A stretch of 55,183 nt of DNA, the filler included, from Bipalium vagum (taxonomy: Eukaryota), in NCBI GenBank assembly GCA_037834085.1. It is 3 parts of 3 records of this genome, joined end to end, with 100 filler letters (N's around TTAATTAATTAA, not from the genome) between each part and the next. Parts side by side here need not be neighbours in the genome. Positions count along the whole stretch, not along the records: positions 16,558 to 32,607 come from JBBMKC010129986.1; 2 more parts are not named here. One strand, written 5' to 3'. Shown here one piece after another: positions 16,558 through 32,607 of this stretch (its first letter is position 1; every line of letters begins with the position of its first letter). A program made the position numbers and the translations under genes. The notes below the pieces were generated by a model that searched no databases, was not told the origin of the DNA, and was given only the letters and a program-made list of their open reading frames with translations.

Positions 16558-16607
16558 AATCTGTCTTAGTTTTCATTTTTATTAAAAGATATTTAAAAAA
16601 TAAAATA

Positions 16608-16633
16608 GTCAGTTACTTATGAAACACCCTGTA
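16608..16633. mobile_element. Orphan Tc1/mariner terminal inverted repeat
   Basis: The reverse complement reads TACAGGGTGTTTCATAAGTAAC, a typical TA-CAGGGTGT terminus. The partner end is probably lost in the gap. Confidence 0.55.
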
Positions 16634-17696
16634 TTAAGAAAATATTAAGTCACCAGGTGATATTTTAATCCAATATGAACTTTGGGCTCATTAATTATCG
16701 ATTTTTTGCCTGCAAAACAGGTGATTTGACATGGCTGTATTATAGCTAAATTTGTCAAATGAAGAATAATTTGTCGATTTCTTATGTACTCTCATTACGG
16801 AAATCAATGTATATATAGTAGTTATATATTGTACAATGTTATATAGCATTCGTCATAATTATTCTTAATTCTTAAAAGCCTACATAAAAACCTACATGCT
16901 CTTTTTAATGGAAGAACACATAATTATTTTCCTTGCAGTGATTTTTAAGAGTCCGAACAACACTTAAATAATTAACCACCTTTAATTACTCAAACAGGGA
17001 TCATTGCTTATTTTCAGTGCTGTACGAATAAATCAGCTTTTCTTCACCAGTGACGATGTTGAAAATTAAATTTGAACTATCTTCAGTCCATTTTTGGAGC
17101 ATATTTATATTCCTATTTTAAATTCTAAAAACTTTGGTACTATTAATTTTTTATTTATTCAATGGTATTATCAAAACATTTTCATTGTGTTTCTTTTTAA
17201 GCAGACTCCCCCCATTCGGTGTGGGGGATCCTTAACAGAAATCATCGATTTATCAATTTTAAAAGCAGTATACACCTCAAATTAATTAGTAACTAACAGT
17301 GGTAAGAAAGACTCTGTCCGTAAACTGTCAACTTGAATAAAACTGGAAGATCATCATCCTTTGCTCACCTGTAGTTTAAATAACCTTTTGTACCTGAGTT
17401 TGGAACACTGTTGTCATTGTGATAATTAAATCTAATTTTTTAAAAGTGCAGCCTTATTCTTTTTATTTATTCTTTATCATAAGTGATAAATAACAGCAAG
17501 AACTACCTTAGTCAATCTTCATTTTTTACCAAAAAAAATTTTCTTATAAAAGTAAGGTATAATTTTTGTTTTCTAAATCGGAAGAGACGAAGACATTTTT
17601 AAAAAGTTGTTAAAAGTTAAAATCTTTCATAGAAAACAATAATATATATCAGGCATAAACAAGGCTCAAGGTCTCATCTCAAATGTATCCACGGAA

Positions 17697-19450
17697 TTAG
17701 AGGGTCCACGTCGGCAACCCAAATACCACTGCCGACTTGCCAGTCAGATTTTTCAGCTTGATTCTGTCAATGGTGTATTCACTCAGTACGTACGTCGGCA
17801 TAGGAGCAGTGGGAAAATATGTTTCAGATTTCGATAAATGATTCCTTTCTTTTTTCAACCAGCTGGATATTATCTTTACACTGAAGTTGTCTATCTCTCC
17901 ATCAGTGACATCCCACAAAAACCCCATGACAGACGGACAGCCAAAAGTCAAATAATACATTATCATTCCAAAGGTTTCCGATCTGCCTTCCAATATCAAT
18001 CTGGCCGACTGACTGGCCAACAAGAACACGGTCGATTCAGAGGTCGTCATCCTGAGGTTTTTCTGAATGAAATATTTGTAACCTGCACCAACTCCTCGAT
18101 ATCTACACAGAAATTGATCAGGTTCACAATGATTATAGAATAAATAAGATTACATTATCAAATCCTTTTCACCAAGAACCCTTTTGGAATTTAATGAATT
18201 TACTGAACCCCCACTCAAATCTTCCCAATTCATAGCACTTTGAAAAGTTGATATGACCTCGCTATCTTTGAGTCTTTCTGAATGCTCTGGAGTCAGTAGA
18301 TAAGAGGCTACGAATGGATCGACCTCGAAGTTCTTTCTCGAAACAAATGGTTCTGGACTTGACATCTTTCTGTAACGAATCTGATGCAGATGACCAATGA
18401 GACTGGAAACATTTGCCATTCTGGTCATGCAATTTGGTCGGTTTAGGTCTCGAATCAGTAGACACTCCAGGGGCAATCGGCACAGATTCTACAATGAAAA
18501 TTATGACATCATAAAGTGACACCTTTGATAAGTCTCCCTACTCGGTCTGCTATGAGAATTTTCGGTTCACAAACCAGAAAGTTCTGTTCATCCATCATCC
18601 ATTTCAAATCTTCATCTTTGAACCAGTCTGCGCGAATTTGGTTCAACAACGATTCCAACGTCTTGTCCAAATAATTTCGTTGATGCCACCAATGTTCTGG
18701 GTCGTTCTCATTCAAATCTTTCACGGAATCAGACTTCAATCTTTCCAATTTCTCCATCAGTTGCAACCCCTGACAAGAATTTCATCACCACCATAAACAT
18801 TAACATTTCTTTACCGTCTTTCTGAAACCATGAAGAACTCGAGTTTCAATGGTCAGCTTTGATTTGCCTTCAACAGTTATCTTCTGAAATTTGGTAACAA
18901 GTAGAGCTGCACAGTTCCGAGCTCCAAAACAACCTCCATCAGAGTTGTCCAGCAAACTCGATCTGATGGAGCTGATCTTGATTTCGTCAATCATCGAAAA
19001 CTGCAAAACGGTCCAGTTCAATGGCAACAACTCTTCAAGTCCACGCCGCATTTCTTTTTCACTTCTCATGGCAACTTTCATTCTGTCTTCCGTGCCCAGC
19101 CATCTCTCGTTCAAAGTTGACCTTCAAATACGAACATCATCAATCAAACCATGACCCAGACCCACAATCAATGTTACTTCATTGAACATTCCAGTGCATA
19201 TAATTGTCTGAAACCGATACCTACGGCCATGGAAAAATAATAGGCAGCCTTTTCCGGATCATTTGATAAATAATGCAAAGCCAACCTCTGATATACCGGT
19301 CGATGAATGACAGGCACATTGAGGTACTTGAATCTCTCAACATGATCTTCTAAGAACTGGATCAATGATGGAGAATTGGATGATCCAAATTCCTCGACGA
19401 TCGATTTCTCTGAAGTCCATAAAATATAAATATACTGATATGAAACAAGA

Positions 19451-19482
<32 letters not shown>

Positions 19483-21625
19483 CATTATATAGTGTATATA
19501 TTACTACCACTATTACTATAATTATTATTATTTTACCATTTCTGTCAGTTTTCAGCCCAGGAATTGTGGGATTTTCGTATTTTATATATCGGACTTTTTC
19601 CGGTAGATAAATTGTGTGGAAAGTTTCGATATCCTTTAAATTAACCTCAGAACATTCTTTCGCCTAAAAGGAAATTTCAAACAATTTTGAGGAATACCTT
19701 AACAATAAACCTTTATTGCCCTTATCTTATCTTTTCTTTGGTATACGACTGGAGTATAAGGCAAAGGTGCTCTTTGCTTTACTTTGGCAGGGGCAATACA
19801 TACTCTTGTAACTGGAGCGTCGTTCGGCGAGTTTTCTGGTGTTATGAAACTCAAGTTGGTCAGGTTCAGAACTAATTTGATCTCATCCATCTGTAATGCA
19901 AATTAATTTAGATCTTTTTCTCCAAGACTAACGTTTGGCTCATCAAAAATGGTCTCCCATTCTTTCTGTTCCTGGAAACAGGTCTCTTTCTTCTCAATTT
20001 CCCAAATATATGACTTCACCACCTTGAAAATCTCCTGAAGACCCTTTCGAAAGTTTGAATGTGACAAAAAACATTGTTCAAACACCAGCTCCTTTTCTCC
20101 CGTATTAAAAGACTTGATATGAACTGTATTTGAACTGATGACCGTATTGCACTTCCTCACAGGGGTCGTAAAGATAACATTATCGACGGCATTGATGCCA
20201 CAATAATACTCAGTGTCATCCATACGAAGACCTGGTTCATCAAAGCTGGCACAGTCGTTTGACTGAACGTTGTTTTTAATCTGATAAAGCTGGGCATCTC
20301 TGATCGTCAAGTCGGCGATTCGAAGATAAATGAAATCGTTATGCATCATTAACCTCACAGCCTTTTCCGTTCTGGATATTTAATTGATTAATATTGTTCA
20401 TGAAAGCGTGACGTGTAACACAGTATCACTTAATGGGGATTTTTCAATCACACCATATAGGATTATGTCATAAAATAACCTCCTTACTTGCAAGGAACGG
20501 AATATTTCCTGGAATAGAAGAACAATTCGTTTTGAAAGGTCTTCGATTCCTGATCTATTCCCATCAAGGTGTAGAGCTCGGAGAAAATTTCCAATCCCAC
20601 CAACAGAGAGTTGATGTTCATCCACAAATTCATCACATTTTCACCTGAAATCGAAGTCAAATTCAAAAAACGAAAAGAAATCTTCCAAACATTGTTGACT
20701 CTGGATTTTCTCTTTCGCTAATTTTTCTTCCAAAAATTCGATGGACCTCAAGGAAACCTTTCTCATGATGGTAGCGTTTTCCAGGAAGTTGAAGCTGAAA
20801 TTCGGAATGTTACCGAAATTGAAGATCTTCATGTTCAAGATATGTGAATAGTGAGCCAGAGTATTCCTTGCGTTGAAGGCGTCAACGGTACATTTACCAA
20901 AGTACCCTTTGTAGTTGTTCTTCAACTGATTGAGCTCGTCGAACAAAACAGGAAACTATATCAACATAATGGTCAGTTCTGGTAGGAGACGAAATCACCA
21001 AAATACCTCAGGATGACAGCTCTTGAAAATAACTTTGGCGAGTTTCACCATCATCGTTTTGCTGTTCTTTACTTCATTGATATTCTTGGACGGTAAGAAA
21101 CCTTTACATTTGTTCACTGATTCATCAGGAATGACTTGTTTGGAATCATGCACAAAATAGAACAATGTTTCCAGAGCCAATGCATAGTTGTACTCTTCAA
21201 CATTACCGGCAATGTGACACAAGACTCTGTAGTACCTTATCGTTTCCAGTTCTTGGGCAAACTAGAAGAATTTTTATATAAAGAAGAAAACTCTCTTATC
21301 TTACTTTCCCGTGAAGATTGTAAAGAACCATCATTATTCTCACTGATCCCAGACTTTCTTTTATTGTTTCCTTTAAAATATCTCTCTTTTGAGATTTGAT
21401 GATGGAGAACTCTCTGTTGATGTATTCAAAGGCTTTTTCCACGGAATGATTCGTGCAGAGACTTTCGATTTCATTACTCTTGTCCTTGTTCTTCATATGA
21501 TCTTCATATAACTCTGACTAAAGAATACCACAGGTTCGGTAACGTTTAAAACAATGAACAAGTTCACTTACATTGGTTTGTAAAGCAACGAAAAACGATC
21601 TAATATTATAGGCGAGATTTGTCAT
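17697..21625 (-). CDS. ESPL1: Separase (ESP1/ESPL1, peptidase C50) homologue lacking the catalytic dyad. Exons 21625-21572, 21517-21305, 21261-21007, 20955-20691, 20644-20488, 20371-19933, 19890-19711, 19663-19537, 19409-19178, 19121-18815, 18769-18542, 18488-18154, 18102-17697; 1065 aa
   Basis: Consecutive minus-strand ORFs join in frame through 12 GT-AG introns (total CDS 3198 nt). Separase motifs present: LPLNWTVLQFS, WWHQRNYLDKTL, ILIADRNLCRLPLECL, TRMANV, YLLTP, DLIIYRGVGAG, GCPSVMGFLWDVTDGEID, AVVFGLP. The exon 4-6 junctions are less certain. Confidence 0.9.
19451..19480 (+). repeat. (ATT)n microsatellite in a separase intron
   Basis: About 10 ATT units, in the 127-nt intron 19410-19536. 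Confidence 0.9.
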
Positions 21626-22000
21626 ATTAAAGTTTTTTCAGTATATAATTATATAAGATTGTATAAAATAATGGTTTTTTTAAAAAAAAATTAAACAAAT
21701 TTATACGGAATTTTCTTATAAATTAATTTTTAAAAATATTTTTCCTTTCAAACGTAAAAAATTCTGAAATTAAAATATTCATTAAAAATGTTGACTGTAT
21801 TTTTAATATCGTTTGTTTTAATATTTTAATATATTGCTTCAGGTTTAAAATATTAAATTTATGTATAGAATAAATCTTTTTTTTTTACTATAAATTTTAA
21901 AAACAAAGTGTTTATATAAATATTTATATTAATTTATATATTTATTATTTAAATCAGAACTTTGTTAAGCGGTATTTAAAAATCAGAAATTAAATAAAAA

Positions 22001-22200
22001 GATATTGTTCATTCGGATTTCCATTTGTTCCGCTCGATGTAATCCGAGCTTTTTGTGAAGCGGTTCAGTTCCGATGTAGACTTTCAAAAATTCATTGATA
22101 GGTAGATTTCTTCAAAGGAACCACAATTTTTTGGTGAAATCCATTCGTTGCCAAAAAGATGGCCCAATGTCACATCTGTAAATGAAAAATATTTTGACAA
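22001..22200 (+). mobile_element. Mariner transposase 3' remnant
   Basis: DIVHSDFHLFRSM...IHSLPKRWPNV...KYFD. Confidence 0.75.
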
Positions 22201-23256
22201 AATGTTAATAAATAAAACTTTAAAAATGTCTTTTATTTAAAAAGAAAGCCGTAATAACACTAGTACAACTAACAATAAAAATCCAAGAAAGCTACTGAAA
22301 AAGTTTCAGGTTAATTTGTTAACTGGTCAAAATTGATGAAATCGTCTAAAATTTCCAGACAGTTTTGTTTTACCAGGCTAATGTAACGAGGACAGAAGAC
22401 CAGAACTCTATTTATTTTAGAAAATATGAAATTTATTTTGAGAAATTGAGAAAAAAATTTCTCACCTGTTAAATTGAAAAAGAAGCCATGATGATTTAGT
22501 GATATGATGACACTAAAATCAAAAGCAATAAAAAGAAACGATAAAAAGCAAGATGTGGACAAGCGATGGAGGTTCAAAAATTCGCCTGGGCTTTGCCTCT
22601 GTTTCGTGGATGGACGAAAAGTCAATAACACAACCCAGAAAAATTTGTTCAAATAATAAGTATTGTGTAACTTTCCTCTGAAACCAATCGAGTTTCATTT
22701 TTTGAATAACTAATTTCCTAATATCTAGTAATAACCGAGCCATATTTAACAAAAATATTTAGGGTAAAAATCTGTTAAATGTTGTAAATATAATTTTTAC
22801 TTAATAAATAAATAAAACTTGAAAATATATTATATATTTAAATACTGAAAATTACCGAAAAAAAAATTGATAAAAAAATATAATTGAACAATTACAGATT
22901 CTAATAGGATCAAGGATAGTCAATTTAGAGTCCCTGGCTATAGCACCTTCCATTGATGAATAATCGGAATGGCACCGCCACAATAATATAACAAATAATA
23001 AGTTTTTAAAAATTAAAGCAATTAATTTAATTATGGTTTTATCAAAAGAGATCAATAGTGCACATTTGACGACTGATATGTTATAAATATTTAAAATAAT
23101 AAATTAAGTGCTGGGAAAGTTTGTGGAATTCAGTACTTTAAGTAATATTCACATTTTGTAATTGATGTAATCATAAAATTCGAAATTAAATCAATCTAAG
23201 TTATTGAATAAGTCAAAATTAGCGAGCTTTCTTTAAATATGTAAACAATTGAAATA

Positions 23257-24125
23257 TCAGGTTGAGGGAAAGTATTGTCGCTTTTTTATTTAAAAAAATC
23301 AAAAGTCGATAAGTGACTGTAAAAAATTCTATTAATCAAAATATGCACCATTAGCATCTACAACCCTTTGCCAACGTCCTATGAATTTCTTTATACCGTT
23401 TCTGAAGAAGTTCTGGTCACGGGATTCAGTAAAAGAGGCTAAGGTATGTTGAACATCATCCTGATTTTTGAATTGCTTATGTCGTAGGAAATTATCAAGT
23501 GACAGGAATAGATGATAATCTGTGAGAGATATATCTAGGGAATAATAAGGTGGGTGATGTAAAATTTGTAATTCGTTAATTTAACAACGTGCGGCGAGCG
23601 TTATCATGAAAAAGTAAACGGACGCCTGAGCTTGGCAAAGGTAGGGTGGTTTTGCTTCAGTTTTCCATGACAAGCATTGAGTTGACGACAGTATGATTCC
23701 GCTGTGACAGTTTCCAAAAAATTTAAGAAATCATAATGAATAATACCGGCCATAAACCACCAAACCGTTAAAATTACTTTCTTCGGAGTAATTCCTTGCT
23801 TTGCAAATGTGTTTGACTGAGCATCTTTGTCTATCCACTTTACAGAACGTTATGTGTTGTCAAAGGACATCTATTTCTCGCCACAAGTAATAATTTTTTT
23901 CAGTATAGTCTCATTTTTGTTTCTAAGCAAAAAAGAAGAGGTAATGGATAATCGCTAAGTTATGCAATTTTTACTCAATTGATGTGGGATCAATTTTGTA
24001 GTTTTTTTACTTTTCCAATTTTTTTAGGATGATCGCAAACTGTTGTGCTACCTACTCCAAATATATCTGCAAGTACACTAGTTGATTGTTTAGGGGATTG
24101 AACTCGATTTTGGCTTTGGAGCTAT
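23257..24125 (-). mobile_element. 5'-truncated decayed mariner (DD34D-type) element
   Basis: TA + TCAGGTTGAGGGAAAGTATTGTCG terminus. Minus-strand motifs ITCGEK, VWWFMAGIIHYDFL, FHDNAR, HHPPY, DYYLFLSLDNFL and RWQRVVDANGAYFD*. Confidence 0.9.
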
Positions 24126-26169
24126 TATAATATATTAATCACCACGATAAGTCTCTAATAAGTCCAATAACCGAAAAAGAGTTACCAAAAAAACAAATAA
24201 TGATAAAAATAAACACAACTACTGCTATAATGAAAGAGGCGAAAGAAATGATTTCAAAAAAGAGTTTTCGGAAAATAACAAAAAAATAAATAAATTAAAT
24301 AAAGCGATCTCACCAAGAGCGACAAGGGGTCCCCGGGTCGCCCTCTAGGCCCTTCTCAGTTTGCCTAGGGGTTCCTAAGCTCGCTGGGTCCCCTTGTAAA
24401 ATCCGTTTGCATAATAGTAGCGTTGAGAAAAAAATTACTGGAATCGTCCTCTGCCAATACCTTGAAAAAATCTTCTGCAAAAAAATTAATAATATTCTTG
24501 ATTGTCTTTCTGACCGTAGTTTCTGGCCCACTTTCTGGGAATTGCAGTCTCTTTAAATAGTCTTAGAGATTGGTCTACGATCACCAATCCCTAATAGTCA
24601 TTAACTCTATCTCCACACCGAGATAGATTCAGATCAATGCAAATGGAAACCTGCAGTCCATCAGAGAACAACTGTCAGAGAATCCATTAGCCTAATATGT
24701 CGAAATCCCCATGACGGGATTTTGTCATAAGGAAAAATTTTTTATTATTAATAATTAATATTATTATTAATTATTATAATTAATTATTTTAATAATTAAT
24801 TATTTATTATTATTAATTAATAATATTTACCATAATAATAATAATTATTATTATTATTTTGAAAACCAAACCATTTAAAATTTAAGTTATTAAAACACAA
24901 ATTACGTAAATTAGTAAATTGTACAGGGGTTGAACGAACTTTTGGAGAGTGCTGTATTTCAAAGTTCTTCCAGTAACCTCCGTAATGATAAAACTTAGGG
25001 AGCAAATCAAAAATTAAATTAAGCAATTTTAAATTTAATTTTTGGATTACATTTCGTATCACTGACATATCTTTTTGTTTACTAGTGTACTAGTTACTTT
25101 GTATACTAGTGGTAAAAACTTGGACCTTTATTTACGAACTCAAATCTGCTCCTTTCTGATAGTTGGTGTAGTAAATCCACTCAAATATCACTGAGAATAT
25201 TTATATCTGTTATTATAAATACAAATACAAAAGATTCAAACAAAACCAGATTTGTGATCACCAAAAATTATCAAGTTGAAAATATAGCCAATAATAAATT
25301 TCAGCAAAATTCGCGACACTATCAGTAAATACGAAAAGTTATTAAATATCAATCGATGAAAAAAAACGAATTTCAAAAAAAGGTACAATGTAATTAATGC
25401 AAACAATTAAAATTGCAAAAGAAAGACAAGAAAAAACAAAAACACCTTTGACAAAAATGTAAATAACTTTTAAAGGTCTGTTCATCATCCTATCCCGCAG
25501 AGACACCCGAAGTCCTGAGCCACAGAAAAATCTTGCTGTTTCATGTTCTGGTGTAATAACGATAACGTATCAAAGAAAAGTAAACGAATTCTGTTCACAA
25601 ATTTTTTCAGACGATAAAGTTTTTTCAATAATAAACAAATCTTCTGATGATAAAGTTATTTCAACCAAACAAAAAAGATACCTTCAATGTCTTCTTCAAG
25701 GGTTCTTCAACACAAAAATAAACTTTAATATACCCAAAAAATATTTTAAAAAAAACAAATTATTCCTTTACTAGGACTCATTTCCGACCGGGGTCGTCTT
25801 TTATAAATAGAGGCTATATGGAATAGTAAATGTTAATTAAAATTGTACTCTTAGAATTTGGATTAGAGGTACACGTAGAATAAATAAAAATGAAAAATAT
25901 CAATTAAGAAATTCCGTACAAAAAAATAACGAAATTTTAATTTTGATTTATTTCTTTGTATTTTTTATCTTATAAAAACGAGTTGGAAACATGGAGAAAC
26001 ATGATCATTGAAGGTAAATATAGAAGTAACAGCTGTCCAATAAAATCTCTTAATAATGTAATGAGAAAATAAAAGTTTATAAAATCATGTTCATTGATGA
26101 ATACAGTTGTCCTTTTAAGCAATGCTTTTTATAGATTGAATTGATTTATATTTCCGTTTTAGATATTAA

Positions 26170-26480
26170 TCAAATCATTCTTCTCCATGACAAACCCAGA
26201 CAACATGTAGCATTAAGAGCGAATTAAACTTTGATAGAGTTAAAATGGGAAATTTTATCTCATTCGGAATTCTCTCCAGACATTGCTCCAAATGAGTTTC
26301 ATTTATTCCGTTCTATACAAAATAGTCTGTCTGATATACAATTTAGCAATGCTGAAGAGGTGCAGAAAATCGTTAATAACTTCATTCAGTCAAAACCAAA
26401 AGACTTTTCATCGGTGTATTCATCTTTTGCCTGAAAAATGCCAAAAAGTTGTAAATAATGATGGAAAATACTTTGATTAA
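26170..26480 (+). mobile_element. Mariner transposase 3' remnant
   Basis: LLHDKPRQH...WEILSHSEFSPDIAPNEFHLFRSIQN...QKVVNNDGKYFD*. Confidence 0.88.
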
Positions 26481-29400
26481 ATGTAGTGTTATTTGTTTTA
26501 CACACCCCTAATGTATAATACTGGCTTAGAAACAAGAGTTATTAAAGAAACATGTCTAAAAATTGTATGAAGGTGATCACGGAGCTGGTTAAAAGTATAC
26601 TGTTTTGCATATTTCACAAGAAAATGTCTCAAAGTAAACAATATTCCATGCTGCAAAGATACGACAATAAACTACCAGTCGAATGAAATTCAGGAAACTT
26701 TATAAAAAAGAAACAAAAATGTTTGATGAATAAATCATATTTAAATAATTCCTGAAAAGAATCAAAAAAACGAAAAAGGTAAGTCGGCTTTTCATATCTC
26801 ATGAGTTTCATGCTAGCAATAATACCTTGTTTATCTGGAGTCCCAGGGTTTGCTGGTTGGAACTGGTATAGGAAAATCTGAAGAAATACAAAAAATATAG
26901 AAATAAAAACGAAAAACGGAATGTGAAATACTCAAACTCGTCAAAAGGGTCAATTTTATTCTTTAAAAAATAAATAAATATGAAAAGTTTTTATAAAATA
27001 TTATTACTGGTTTGGATATGGTTGAATAATTGAAAAACCAAGTGATATGTGACCAACCATTATCAGAAATATATCAAAAGTGATGGGGTCTGATCATCGG
27101 TTGAGTGTCGGTCGTTATAATCCATTTACTCGTTTCCTGTATTCCTTCTGTTTGAGCATAAATTTTCTGAAATGATAAATTTAGTTCCTGATGTCAGAGA
27201 TTCCCTATCATCTTCTTTTCAACTTACTTTTCTCTATCAACTCCGGACCAGATCAATTGCCTTTAGTATTTCCTTTAATTATGACAAATTGGATAATATC
27301 CTCCAGTTTTTCAGATCAAAATGAGATGGTTCAAGCATAAAGAGGAATTGAGAAATTAATATATTTTCAGTCAGAAAAATATTTTTTATTATCACTTCCA
27401 ATTTATTATTTATTAATATAGTAATAAAATAAAATTGAAATATTATTATTATTGTTATAATTTTCCTTCTGAACCTCTTAGTCGATCATTATTGATTATA
27501 TTTCAGACTCTCAAAATTGGTTTATTGTTAGATCTCAAAGAACATCAAGAAGATCTATTGAAATAAGGTAAGTTCGGTTGAAATAAGCTTTCTTTTAGTT
27601 AAAAAATGTTATTCTGAATATTCAATTATTATGAAAAATCATAAATAATTAAATTATGACAATTGTAACAAAAATTAATCGATTAATTACTAAAATCCAG
27701 GTTAAGAAGAAAACTCAACTTATTTATCAAGGAACCCCCCCATGAATTATTATTTTTGTAAAACCATAATATTGATTACGTAAACGTTGAGTAAGGATGG
27801 TAATATATCATTTTTGATGGAATATCCGTGATAATTTGACTATTAATAAATGACTTCGGCATTATTCCTGGTATGGCTATCGGGTTGGTTATCCTATCGA
27901 ATATTGTATAAGAAGACAATCAAAATTCATTTGCTTGTCTAAAACTGAATCGATTAAGTGTACGTCTAAATTCAGTGATTGTTAACTTTAAATCACGTGT
28001 TCATTCGGAAAGTTCCAAAGTCATTGGAGTCAGATTATATGAGTCATGTAGACAGTATCTGAGCAAAATTTTTCGATGAGTTCGTACTAATGATTATTTG
28101 CACAAAGGATTGTCCTCGGGTCTTGAGCCTGCTTAACTACTAACATGTGAATGGTAAACTTTAAGGGGTACCGAGCAGAAGTTGATTTAAAGTGAATAGT
28201 CTAGTATTATGATTATTTCTAATTTATCCATTTGGTAATTCATTTTTACTCGGAATCCTCCTTTCATCCAAAGTTATTTCATTCTTACAAAATGATTTTG
28301 AAAACAACAGTTTAACTATGTCCTATCATCAACAAGATTTTTGAATTTCCCTCCAAATATTAATGTTATCAAAAGCGACATTAAATAAGAAATTTTTAAT
28401 TCGTATTGAGATTTTCCCGAATTTGATGCATCAGACATGAAAGTTAACTTACAATTCCCCAAATCAAGAGTGCAAAACAATATCTTCCTCAAAATAATTC
28501 CCAAAATATATATCACATTCAAACTTATGGCTTTAGTTTTCTCATCACCTATCAAACATTATCTTCCAGCTCAAAATTACTTCAGTCTACTGAGACCACT
28601 GAAAAATGGTTTTTAAAGACAGCGTATAAATAAAAAACCGAATATTTTTAATCAAAATAAACTTATCACGAAGTTCGTGAACTTTGGTTCATGTACTTCT
28701 TATTCTTGCATTAATAATCAGAAATTCTTAATTTTGTGTCTCACCATAAAGAACAGCTTAACATTTTTTTATATCTGATTAAAAATGTTTCTCTTATATT
28801 CGGTTGTTAACTCTTCAGAAAAATTTCTCAAAGAACCGGATAGAGAAACTACTTTTATGAAAATTTTCATAGCCAGCCAATCAGTCCTGTCGTTGTCTGT
28901 CTAATATTCTGGACAAAATAATTTATTTCCATTAATTTTTGATTCGTCATTAACTGTACATTTCAAGATAAAGTAAACTTAAAATAAATGACTGCTAGAT
29001 TTTCTCAAGTCGAAAAGATTATTAAAATTTAAATAACTAATTAATAATAAGTTTGGAAGGTATGAAAAAATCTTTACAATTCGGTTTATTGCATTTTTAT
29101 GTCAGCATAAATAGTTTTAAAACCTCCATATTTTTCCTTCGGACTCACTTGTGCCAGATAATTAGATCGCATGTAACACCATAACTTAAGATAACAGAAA
29201 AATCAATAAAATTCTTCATATTCAAAATGATGATAAATAAATATTTTCCAGAAACCAAAGGCGCAATTTTTTATTGATAATAACAACAATTTCTTTTTAT
29301 TTCCGTGACGGAAAAACATGAAAAATAGCTCGATCGATAACGATTTTTATATTTGACAAATGTTGATCAATAATACAGTGTGTTCCACATAAATCAATAA

Positions 29401-29634
29401 ATATACATGTTTATATATTTATAATATTTATGTACAGAATTTATTACAAGTAATTATCGATTTTTATCTAAATATATTTATATATATAGAAAGAAACATA
29501 AGGAGAGGAGATGAAGAGAAAAATCTCGACAGACTGAGAAAGAGATAATCGATTGCGATTTCGAATTTCTTACGTGCTCACACGAAGATGACACTGAGAA
29601 AAATCGATAATCAATTAATAAATTAAGAAAAAAA

Positions 29635-30813
29635 TCAATAAAATTTGATGTCGGCATCATCTGAGCCATTTGATTTCTGAGCCAATTTCAAAGCCGCTCT
29701 TTGATTCATCTTGAAAACGGCTATCATTTGCTTCCTTTTTTCGGCGTCGCTCATGGACGATAATGTCCGACACTGTCCTCCTTCTTCCGGATTGACCTGC
29801 ACTGTTTCAGTGACAGCACTGATGGATTTCTTTTTCGGCTGACCATTTTGAACGACTTGTTGATTATTTGGTTTTGTTTGGCAGCAAGAGGAGGAACGAT
29901 CTGACACAACCGAAACAGACTTCTTTCCGGTCCTGTACAGTGGTTGGGATGGTATCGATTTTCTGTTGGCGGTTCTGGTAGGTGTATTTTGTAATGTCGT
30001 GTTCGAATTCCTCTCCTGGAACGGTATCATCTTCCATCCATTAGCCCGAATTCGTTCGACTGTAACAAAGTTTCGATTGATGTCTTCGACCTGACCAAAC
30101 ACCATGTCCCAGAATCCACGCAGGTCCGAACTCAGGGTCGGCAGTTCGTTGTCGTGATTGATGCCGCTGATGTTCTTTTCACAAAGACCCTTGAATTGTA
30201 GCAGTTTTTCAGCTAAGAGCAACTTGGCCTTGCCAACCGTAACCATCAGCTGACCGGACACTGTATGGAGGAACGAAAAAAATAATGTTAAGCGAATGTC
30301 AAGAATAATCTGTAAATGCATACCCTCATCATCCAATTCCAGCAATGAGGCGTCTTCGAGATATTTCTGAACGATATCGATTTTATCGAGAATTTCATGC
30401 TCATGTCGACGGACAATTTCCAAAAAGTAATGACCATCGAACAGACCTTCCTCTCCCTTCTTTTCTCCTACTTCTCCTTTCTGTTCTTCTTTCTCCCGAT
30501 TGGCAACAATCCCATTTTCTTTCGGTCCTTGTTGTTCTATGTTGTGATCGATTTTCACCATTGAACTGAATTCGAGATTTGATTCGTCGTCATCGTTTCC
30601 ATTACCGACAAAATCGAATTCTTTGTTTGAACTTGTGGAAATATTATCGAAATTCAATTTTCCCGTTGGGGTTTGGGACGATTGGTGGTCAAAGGCTCTA
30701 TCTTTGATGCTTGACGAACTCAATTGTTTAGACACGGCTTTGCTTCGAGGGCTGTTATGAGATACGACCAACATTATCATAGAGGATTTTGCTACTAAAG
30801 ATTGGCTGTGTTC
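29635..30813 (-). CDS. GKAP-domain protein (DLGAP/SAPAP/vulcan/HURP family), 3' exons 30813-30324 and 30260-29635; the 5' end is uncertain
   Basis: DGHYFL...VSGQLMVTVGKAKLLLAEKLLQFKGLCEKN...PTLSSDLRGFWDMVFGQVEDINRNF..RANGWK is the GKAP homology domain. A 63-nt GT-AG intron (30323-30261) lies in frame inside the ORF. An acceptor at 30814 suggests upstream exons. Confidence 0.9.
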   Translation of the reverse strand, partial: EHSQSLVAKSSMIMLVVSHNSPRSKAVSKQLSSSSIKDRAFDHQSSQTPTGKLNFDNISTSSNKEFDFVGNGNDDDESNLEFSSMVKIDHNIEQQGPKENGIVANREKEEQKGEVGEKKGEEGLFDGHYFLEIVRRHEHEILDKIDIVQKYLEDASLLELDDEGMHLQIILDIRLTLFFSFLHTVSGQLMVTVGKAKLLLAEKLLQFKGLCEKNISGINHDNELPTLSSDLRGFWDMVFGQVEDINRNFVTVERIRANGWKMIPFQERNSNTTLQNTPTRTANRKSIPSQPLYRTGKKSVSVVSDRSSSCCQTKPNNQQVVQNGQPKKKSISAVTETVQVNPEEGGQCRTLSSMSDAEKRKQMIAVFKMNQRAALKLAQKSNGSDDADIKFY

Positions 30814-31594
30814 CTGAATCGATTAATACTTATTTAGTGTTGAAAAAATCGATAAATTTAAAAAATCCAGAAAATTTATTTAACCGATTTGATTTCAGAA
30901 CAAAATAGAAATCAATTGATAACATGAAAATTATTTTAAAATTTAAACATGTTCAATTAAAGAAAAATTATGGGAAAAATTACCGTTTTGATTTATTGGA
31001 AAAAAGCATAAAAATTTAAACAAAAATTTATTTGGATAGACTTTTTGAATTTATTTGTCAAATTAATTAAATATGTTACATAATTAGTAAAATTTTAAAA
31101 AAACTTATTTACAAAATTAGGATAAAAATTAAAATTATCATTGCAAAATTCTTTCTGTAAATAAATCACATATTTGGGGAAATAATTAATATTCCCAACT
31201 TTTTCAGGAAAATAAACAAAACAAAAATAATAGTTTCATAAAAAAATGAATATAAAAACTATAAAATATAAATTAACAATAATCAGAATAATTGGTGAAA
31301 TTCAAAACTATTACTAAATAATAATAATAATAAAATGAATTCTTAATAAAGTAATAAAAATAAAATCAATACTAATAAATAAATTGCAAAATTACAAAAA
31401 AATCAATTGTAAAAAAGACTTGTCAATATCGTTTTAAATTGATGGAAATAGAAACAGTCGATAATATTAAACTGGTAAGTCGTTTCATAAATCGTTTTTC
31501 AATAACGCATAAAAATAAGAAAAAATACAAGCATACTACAATCAATGAAATCAATTCAGGATGTTTAAATTGTTGACAAGGAATTGATGCTAAG

Positions 31595-31790
31595 ATGATG
31601 AATAATCAACCGACGAGAGACGATTTTCGGTATTGCATTCTTTATGATTTGTGAAAAGGAAAAAAGACTACAGAAACAACTTATAGCATAATTTCAGTTT
31701 ATATAAAAGCACTGGACGCCAGAACATGTCAACGTTGGTTTTCCAGATTTAGGAAAAGAGATTATTTTATTGATGACCGTCCATATTGAT
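31595..31790 (+). mobile_element. Mariner transposase N-terminal HTH remnant
   Basis: FRYCILYDL*KGKKTTE...ALDARTCQRWFSRFRK. Confidence 0.8.
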
Positions 31791-32530
31791 CTGAGCTTCG
31801 ACTATATCCATAAATTCCTTTCACATTCAAAATCCATTTTTTCAATTACTTTGGCTCTTTTAGGATCAGGACCTCTCATTCGATTTAAAATTTGAGAATT
31901 TTTAAAAATTTTGATTTCATAAAATTGTTGAATTTTATTGTAATAAATAATGATCGATTTAAAAATATTCAATCATACAATTGTATTGATATATTAGAGC
32001 GATAACAATGTTCAATTTTTCAACATCAGTATTAAATCTGTGTTAAAATCAATTGAAAATGATTTTTTAAAAATGCTAAAATTTATCTATTTTTAAATGG
32101 TGATAATCTCGCCTTCACAATTTTTGGGGAAATTCTTTGAAAAAATTAAATTTTTTTCAAATATAAAAATTAAATTTCCTATTAAAATAATCGATTGAAA
32201 AATTGAATTTATTCAAAACTTTCTATTGCCGAAAAAGGGTTTCAAAAAAAAAAAGTAAAAATCTAACTCGACTTCTTCGAAATTTTAGATCGCTTGGCCG
32301 TTGGGATTTTCTCAGCTGAAATAAAATTGACGTGAAAACTGAGAGAAATGGATGTTCTATTAACATTTTTAAAGAAAATATTTTTAATTTTTCTAATAGA
32401 AACATTTTATTATACCTCACATCAATTTTTTCCATTAATTTTTTATCAAAAATAAAAATTAACTTTCATGAAAATAATATCATCTTTATTATTGATTTTT
32501 TCATTAAAATTCATTTTATTTTTATTACCA

Positions 32531-32532
<2 letters not shown>

Positions 32533-32585
<53 letters not shown>
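32533..32585 (+). repeat. (ATT)n microsatellite
   Basis: About 17 perfect units next to a gap. Confidence 0.95.
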
Positions 32586-32586
<1 letters not shown>

Positions 32587-32607
32587 TTTATTGTGCTTAT
32601 GTAAGGC

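Follow-up and report, generated by a model that had tools for sequence, protein, structure and literature searches.

Separase is the protease whose action allows chromosomes to part when a cell divides, and it is normally encoded by a single, essential gene with an invariant catalytic His–Cys dyad. The window analysed here is a 55,183-nucleotide (nt) stretch of DNA from Bipalium vagum (GenBank assembly GCA_037834085.1). The part of it that derives from record JBBMKC010129986.1 (positions 16,558 to 32,607) carries on its minus strand, at 21625..17697, a full-length separase homologue in which Val stands for the catalytic His and Ser for the catalytic Cys. We think it rather likely that the product is no longer a clan CD cysteine protease and is kept by selection as a non-catalytic protein, probably as a paralogue.

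The dyad lies in the last of 13 exons, whose product begins YRGVGAGYKYF and continues with VFLLASQSARLILEG (translation of 17697-18101). Exon 13 was aligned with MAFFT to 152 homologues, namely the best 150 of 874 database matches together with the exons of two close relatives, L001 and L002 (Logan contigs SRR21676451 and SRR33002330, respectively, both short). The column of the catalytic His holds His in 140 of 143 homologues and Val in the Bipalium gene; that of the catalytic Cys holds Cys in 150 of 151 and Ser in the Bipalium gene; and the column directly before the Cys, where the Bipalium gene has Ala, holds Gly in all 151. In phmmer comparisons exon 13 aligned without a gap to yeast Esp1 (YIGHGGGEQY...FLLGCSSAAM), with one single-residue gap to the Chaetomium thermophilum enzyme, and over query residues 1-130 to residues 2000-2116 of human separase. 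Provided that the human alignment is ungapped over the first 30 residues, Val 4 would correspond to H2003 and Ser 30 to C2029, the catalytic pair of the human enzyme (PMC12609080). Active members of clan CD carry the dyad in the motif His-Gly ... (Ala/Gly/Ser/Thr)-Cys (PMC7804941), where the Bipalium gene has Val-Gly ... Ala-Ser. The sequence-only reading had located both codons and placed them 26 codons apart, which is right by translation, and its claim that both catalytic residues are lost is borne out by the homologue columns and by the alignment to the yeast structure. A relocated dyad was considered and rejected: no His stands close to the site in exon 13, and the one Cys that the exon encodes is that of the GCP motif, which is conserved and non-catalytic. 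Among the best 150 of the 874 matches no other sequence has both catalytic residues replaced, and four deviate at a single column. In three fragments the residue at the His column is not His and lies in a poorly aligned N-terminal end; P0067, a JGI metagenome fragment of 177 residues, keeps GHG and has Tyr for the catalytic Cys (LLGYSSAS), the only other replacement of the nucleophile in that set.

Outside the dyad, the domain is largely retained. Of 32 exon 13 columns conserved at 80% or more, the Bipalium gene keeps 25, L001 28 and L002 23; its private losses among them are the His, Gly and Cys only, the other four being shared with both relatives. The motifs LWDVTD, EID, GCP, L..L.G and FGLP and a conserved Trp are present, and the G-A-G loop after the His position is kept, with Lys at the place of human R2008. 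The Asp of EID, which by alignment offset maps to human D2070, is the same in all three sequences and 99% conserved in homologues; in the human enzyme it hydrogen-bonds the P1 arginine of the substrate (PMC12609080). Exon 12, aligned with 115 homologues, reads LPLE for LPWE and SYLLTPEHSERLK for YYxLNPxxxLxxT. Its private losses at columns conserved at 90% or more are the Asn, Leu and Thr of the latter motif: Thr stands at the Asn of LNP (Asn in 93% of homologues, and kept by L002), Glu at the conserved Leu, and Lys at the Thr column (Thr in 96% of homologues, and kept by L001 and L002). This Lys is probably the equivalent of human T1961, another contact of the P1 arginine (PMC12609080), because an ungapped count back from the conserved Trp agrees with that pairing; an alternative alignment with two indels places Ser 76 at T1961 instead. 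Judged by sequence alignment, the S1 pocket would thus keep the equivalents of D2070 and G2002 and would probably have Lys for T1961.

Set beside separases in general (family C50, PF03568; human ESPL1, yeast Esp1, and those of Schistosoma and Echinococcus), the Bipalium protein has a colinear C-terminal caspase-like domain and shares the motifs LP(W)E, R-x-P, LWDVTD-x-EID, GCP and GLP, the S1 Asp (D2070) and the G-A-G loop. It differs from them in the dyad, in the Ala for the Gly before the Cys, in LTP for LNP, and in Glu and Lys for the conserved Leu and Thr. The alignments point to an active site that has been dismantled on a scaffold that has been kept, with residue losses targeted to active-site motifs. 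The catalytic residues are gone while the fold-defining residues and an intact gene remain, which is one mark of a pseudoenzyme.

The assignment to separase, likewise proposed from the sequence alone, was upheld by profile, structure and protein searches. Against the Pfam family Peptidase_C50 (PF03568), exon 13 matched profile positions 326-395 of 395 (E-value 2.2e-14; 53.9 bits, cut-off 27.8), exon 12 positions 226-323, and exon 11 positions 54-96 (E 6.4e-5), so that the three exons meet their segments in colinear order. Exon 13, run with HMMER against 1.84 billion representatives, gave the 874 proteins at E <=0.001; about 30 were looked up, and all were separases from across the eukaryotes or unnamed contig fragments. 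Separases in the PDB matched exon 13 with E-values from 3.5e-13 to 1.3e-7. In tblastn comparisons L001 matched exon 11 (E 1.5e-21), L002 and flatworm separases matched exon 12 (E 5e-13 for L002), and exons 10-11 were colinear with residues ~920-1180 of flatworm separases. Exon 5 was colinear with residues ~250-400 of the separases of Schistosoma, Echinococcus, Clonorchis and Calicophoron (E 1e-6 to 4e-5), and its N-terminal matches were limited to flatworm separases. Membership of family C50 by homology is therefore seen both in the profile match across the caspase-like domain and in the colinear N-terminal helical region. Most N-terminal exons had no match detectable by tblastn, which is usual for the poorly conserved separase N-terminus. 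With 1065 residues, the protein is shorter than flatworm separases (1321-1470) and those of vertebrates (~2100). No other C50-like sequence, including an alternative or duplicated catalytic exon, was found by tblastn in 16558-32607, and Rfam gave no matches in the same piece. Homologous-protein searches with exon 13 and with P0003 gave no protein besides P0001 and the query, a metagenome scan with a three-sequence alignment gave no matches, and an Atlas search gave a generic separase/CHAT neighbourhood only.

The gene model was rebuilt exon by exon and checked in full by script, and it reproduces the 13-exon, 1065-residue frame first described from the sequence alone. The coding sequence is 3198 nt long (1065 codons and a TAA stop), with no internal stop or frameshift. 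All 12 introns are GT..AG, 42-127 nt long (10 of them 42-56 nt), and their phases are consistent, with the codons TGT, AAA, GAG, AAG and ATA split between exons. The G+C content is 40% in exons, 29% in introns and 24-28% in the flanks, a contrast between exons and introns as expected of a true exon-intron structure. Intron 12, which the sequence-only reading had given as a 51-nt intron, has verified GT..AG ends and carries an in-frame TAA, so that its removal by splicing is required; an intron of L002 matches it in position and phase. The acceptor and donor positions of exon 11 are common to the Bipalium gene and L001. Before exon 12, a 32-nt intron (18520-18489) was dropped for a 53-nt one (18541-18489), because the L001 donor lies directly after the homologous ...DR codon and because the spacing ILxxDR-xxxxLPxE then matches that of other separases without a gap; the choice also yields the 1065 codons of the sequence-only reading. 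The hallmarks of a pseudogene (stops, frameshifts, lost splice sites) were thus sought across 13 exons and 12 introns, and none was found.

A consensus slip at the replaced codons is excluded by a Logan contig of depth 23 that spans 17650-19439 without a differing letter. It comes from the sole public run in which the stretch occurs, probably that of the assembly's own sample, and covers both codons and the intron 12 junction. Logan contigs drop rare variants. In one public run, no contig at least 90% identical to 17650-19439 was found besides a short stray match from 17942 onward. This second contig of run X1 was considered as a paralogue and ruled out as a short, AT-rich chance match: its loose end, reverse-complemented and translated by hand in the gene frame, reads F-E-H-E-T-P-N-R-F-stop against GCPSV. 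Further, 99% of the sampled words of the whole stretch are present in run X1, and over 19660-21650, which makes up two thirds of the gene on its 5' side, its contigs are essentially absent except for a depth-1 record at ~20398, which a record-dropping filter may explain. Read-level confirmation is confined to the 3' part of the gene. Public-run contigs also break within intron 8 (127 nt), at an (AAT)n/(ATT)n microsatellite to which 16 short records match at 90-95%.

The two relatives bear on the history of the dyad. Exon 13 of L001 is 68% identical to that of the Bipalium gene in the best-matched part and 62% over the whole exon, and reads YCGHGAG...LVGCQSAR; L002 is 39% identical, reads YCGHGSG...LIGCQSAR and has TYYILNPDG. 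Because both keep His and Cys (GHG...GCQS), the catalytic loss is derived. In a quick tree search over ~140 columns, the three sequences form a clade (99 in the Shimodaira–Hasegawa-like approximate likelihood-ratio test), sister to the separases of neodermatan flatworms (82), with Macrostomum next (88). This placement, the flatworm-only match of exon 5, and an AT-rich genome with introns of ~50 nt all point to a flatworm. The His codon is CAC in both relatives and GTT in the Bipalium gene (three bases differ), the Gly codon GGT and GCC (two), and the Cys codon TGT in L001 or TGC in L002 and AGT (one to two); two neighbouring Cys codons are changed as well, by two bases each. AT-bias was ruled out as the cause of the substitutions, since it does not account for CAC to GTT, GGT to GCC or TGC to CGA. 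Over 278 codons shared with L001, the proportion of synonymous differences is 0.79 (saturated) and that of non-synonymous differences 0.28. These multi-base codon differences, together with saturated synonymous sites, suggest an old loss. Polarised with L002 as outgroup, the Bipalium gene has 24 private amino-acid changes and L001 four (binomial p = 1.8e-4); the end branches in a quick maximum-likelihood tree are 0.63 and 0, respectively, and three-way arithmetic on exon 13 gives ~0.22 changes per non-synonymous site on the Bipalium branch and 0.04 on that of L001. A 24:4 acceleration is typical of a copy freed from its original function.

Both relatives have peculiarities of their own. The penultimate exon of L001 (387-720) lacks ~10 residues and the YYxLNP strand, and can be read through only with a 1-nt frameshift between ...AEPVDPQ and ADITIEFQETEDAV, which is either a contig error or a damaged copy in that species. 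In L002 (403-828) the dyad and YYILNP are kept, LWSVDS stands where 89-99% of separases have LWDVTD, and the C-terminal stretch LLQMMTCLSPIVFGLP is unusual.

An accelerated branch is also expected of a decaying copy, and the main rival explanation is that a duplicate separase is becoming a pseudogene, with catalysis lost, constraint relaxed and the frame still open through the short time elapsed. The strong acceleration, the six near-invariant residues that are gone, a surrounding region rich in transposon remnants and the apparent exon 12 frameshift of L001, which hints that the gene lineage may be dispensable, would all suit such a copy. However, in a simulation of neutral evolution (substitutions only, 1065-codon frame, 2000 trials) the frame was left open in 4.5% of trials at 2% divergence, in 0.05% at 5% and in none of the 2000 at 10%, and indels and the 24 splice-site dinucleotides would lower this survival further. 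At the ~0.2 non-synonymous changes per site of exon 13, a neutral Bipalium branch would have closed its frame, so the gene is read as maintained. Random decay further predicts otherwise than private losses that hit active-site motifs only and spare fold columns, and it sits poorly with 12 canonical introns out of 12 and with catalytic codons that differ by up to three bases each. The at least six base changes in the three catalytic codons imply sites free to change over a time that would have been fatal to a neutral gene, and the decay of a mariner transposase 2 kb off, already broken by stops, supports the upkeep of the open separase frame. A pseudogene in the making is accordingly an unlikely account of the gene, and we favour a maintained, non-catalytic protein. 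The active-site changes could also be the work of selection and not of drift, which would itself imply a function.

Several points weigh against upkeep and against paralogue status. None of the RNA runs among the public runs contains the stretch, as would suit a dying duplicate, and the contig that confirms the sequence is non-independent support. Only two close relatives were present in the searched collections, so that the timing of the loss and the selection that followed are not directly measurable; the argument for an old loss presumes that the relatives hold the ancestral codons and that no fast, selection-driven change took place. Synonymous sites are saturated, and the ratio of non-synonymous to synonymous rates on the Bipalium branch alone needs closer orthologues. 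Finally, the paralogue reading is based on a 16-kb piece of the genome.

This last point bears on a second rival, that the gene is the sole separase of the organism, with chromatids released by another route (non-proteolytic cohesin removal or another protease) or with a relocated nucleophile. It draws on the single C50-like sequence of the 16-kb piece, on the public run with no similar contig besides the stray match, and on the retained S1-pocket Asp and G-A-G-x-K loop beside the former His. However, all eukaryotes studied depend on proteolysis by separase, the dyad is intact in the nearest relatives, exon 13 has no His close to where the active site was, the piece shows only 16 kb of the genome, and a 24:4 asymmetry is more in keeping with a redundant copy than with an essential single gene, which together make a sole dead separase very improbable. 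So extreme a difference in rate suits a redundant copy, and on this ground we favour a paralogue beside an active separase. That the replacements are an artefact, whether through misassembly, a faulty consensus, a minor haplotype or RNA editing back to His and Cys, is scarcely credible even though only the contigs of one run, probably the source sample, were checked and rare variants are dropped from them, given that the depth-23 contig agrees at every base, that restoring the residues needs several separate base differences in three codons as well as the exon 12 changes, and that neither A-to-I nor C-to-U editing can make a His codon from GTT.

Dead separases are known from the laboratory, where they are potent dominant negatives that trap cohesin and keep signalling roles independent of proteolysis, and they offer a guide to what a natural one may do. 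Protease-dead separase of C. elegans (SEP-1 PD) folds, binds substrate and has a dominant-negative effect that is relieved when the cohesin substrate is depleted; the authors read this as substrate trapping and note that separase also has non-proteolytic signalling roles (10.1101/069906). The human C2029S mutant likewise binds SCC1 in a stable complex (PMC12609080). These engineered proteins share the Cys-to-Ser change of the nucleophile with the Bipalium gene, whereas the change in the latter is natural and extends to the His and to pocket-proximal residues, so that substrate binding may differ. Outside the family, the pseudo-caspase c-FLIP(L) and the iRhoms are protease paralogues without catalytic residues that keep their fold and regulate by binding (PMC7586951); unlike the Bipalium gene, they are not derived from separase. 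No natural inactive separase was found in a full-text literature search, in which 'inactive separase' denotes laboratory mutants, and the terms 'separase paralog(ue)', 'pseudo-separase' and 'separase-like protein' were absent from the literature searched. A pseudo-protease derived from separase would be a new form within the known class of pseudo-proteases.

By analogy with these proteins, a natural Cys-to-Ser, His-to-Val separase with a kept scaffold is most plausibly a binder. In the mechanism that we propose, the change from His-Gly...Gly-Cys to Val-Gly...Ala-Ser and the pocket-proximal changes would have cost the protein its cysteine protease activity, and selection would keep it as a folded protein. 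It would then act as a scaffold or binder for separase-docking partners, be it kleisin, a securin-like inhibitor or a kinase complex, and would sit beside a second, active separase gene elsewhere in the genome. Trapping of kleisin is not singled out, because the pocket is altered by the Thr-to-Lys replacement among others; a securin-like inhibitor or other partner could equally well dock on the retained surfaces. The proposal of a maintained, catalytically dead separase made by the sequence-only reading hence stands as far as homology, the replaced dyad, the intact frame and the derived loss are concerned, and the pattern of change favours upkeep; its candidate roles are those of a securin sponge, a cohesin protector, a Cdk1-cyclin B binder or a trafficking factor, and a pure substrate-trap role is less clear-cut than it implies, given the probable Lys at the T1961 equivalent and the other pocket changes. 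More speculatively, a natural dead separase could be a built-in brake on cohesin cleavage, working as a substrate trap or securin-like competitor, that blocks or delays separation at a particular division, for example a skipped meiotic division in an asexual or parthenogenetic flatworm; its extreme case would be that this is the only separase of the lineage. We hold this idea to be improbable.

The neighbourhood of the gene contains transposon remnants and one further candidate gene (Table 1). The decayed mariner-type transposase ~2 kb upstream of the separase gene matches PF01359 (Transposase_1) over 23607-23849 (E 1.2e-20), and stops separate its C-terminal part, 23335-23580. A second, more degraded mariner copy has the motif SPDIAPNEFHLF and no Pfam match. 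Some 8 kb from the separase gene, a single-exon open reading frame (ORF) of 381 residues from its ATG, within a 395-residue open stretch, carries a GKAP domain (PF03359, E 3.4e-16); its only database match is one unnamed MetaClust protein of 296 residues (38% identity), and it may encode a DLGAP5/HURP-like spindle protein. The right edge of the piece is occupied by long trinucleotide repeats that would translate as poly-Leu and poly-Tyr runs.

Table 1. Positions, along the whole stretch, of the separase exons, informative codons and neighbouring features.
Feature	Position	Strand	Remark
Exon 1	21625-21572	minus	
Exon 2	21517-21305	minus	
Exon 3	21261-21007	minus	
Exon 4	20955-20691	minus	
Exon 5	20644-20488	minus	N-terminal helical region; colinear match to flatworm separases only
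Exon 6	20371-19933	minus	
Exon 7	19890-19711	minus	
Exon 8	19663-19537	minus	
Microsatellite	19440-19493		(AAT)n/(ATT)n, in intron 8
Exon 9	19409-19178	minus	
Exon 10	19121-18815	minus	
Exon 11	18769-18542	minus	Start of C50 region; end reads ...PKILIADR
Exon 12	18488-18154	minus	N-terminal half of protease domain
Thr ACT	18293-18291	minus	At LNP Asn
Lys AAA	18269-18267	minus	Residue 74 of exon 12; at conserved Thr column; probable T1961 equivalent
Intron 12	18153-18103	minus	51 nt; GTAATC...TGTAG; splits ATA codon as AT/A
Exon 13	18102-17697	minus	C-terminal half of caspase-like protease domain; both former catalytic positions
Val GTT	18092-18090	minus	Catalytic His column (human H2003)
Ala-Ser GCC AGT	18017-18012	minus	Replaces invariant Gly-Cys; Ser (18014-18012) at Cys column (human C2029)
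Asp GAC	17891-17889	minus	Residue 71 of exon 13; Asp of EID, human D2070 by alignment offset
Mariner-type transposase	23335-23849	minus	Decayed
Mariner copy	26228-26477	plus	More degraded
GKAP-domain ORF	29638-30780	minus	Single exon
Trinucleotide repeats	32400-32607		Right edge of piece

Planarian genomes have been described as lacking MAD1 and MAD2, two genes of the spindle checkpoint. If the dead separase of Bipalium is indeed maintained by selection, it would be a natural experiment on the roles of separase without cutting, and could expose a new level at which chromosome separation is controlled in this lineage, probably in flatworms. Were it instead the only separase of its lineage, it would mean an anaphase without separase proteolysis.

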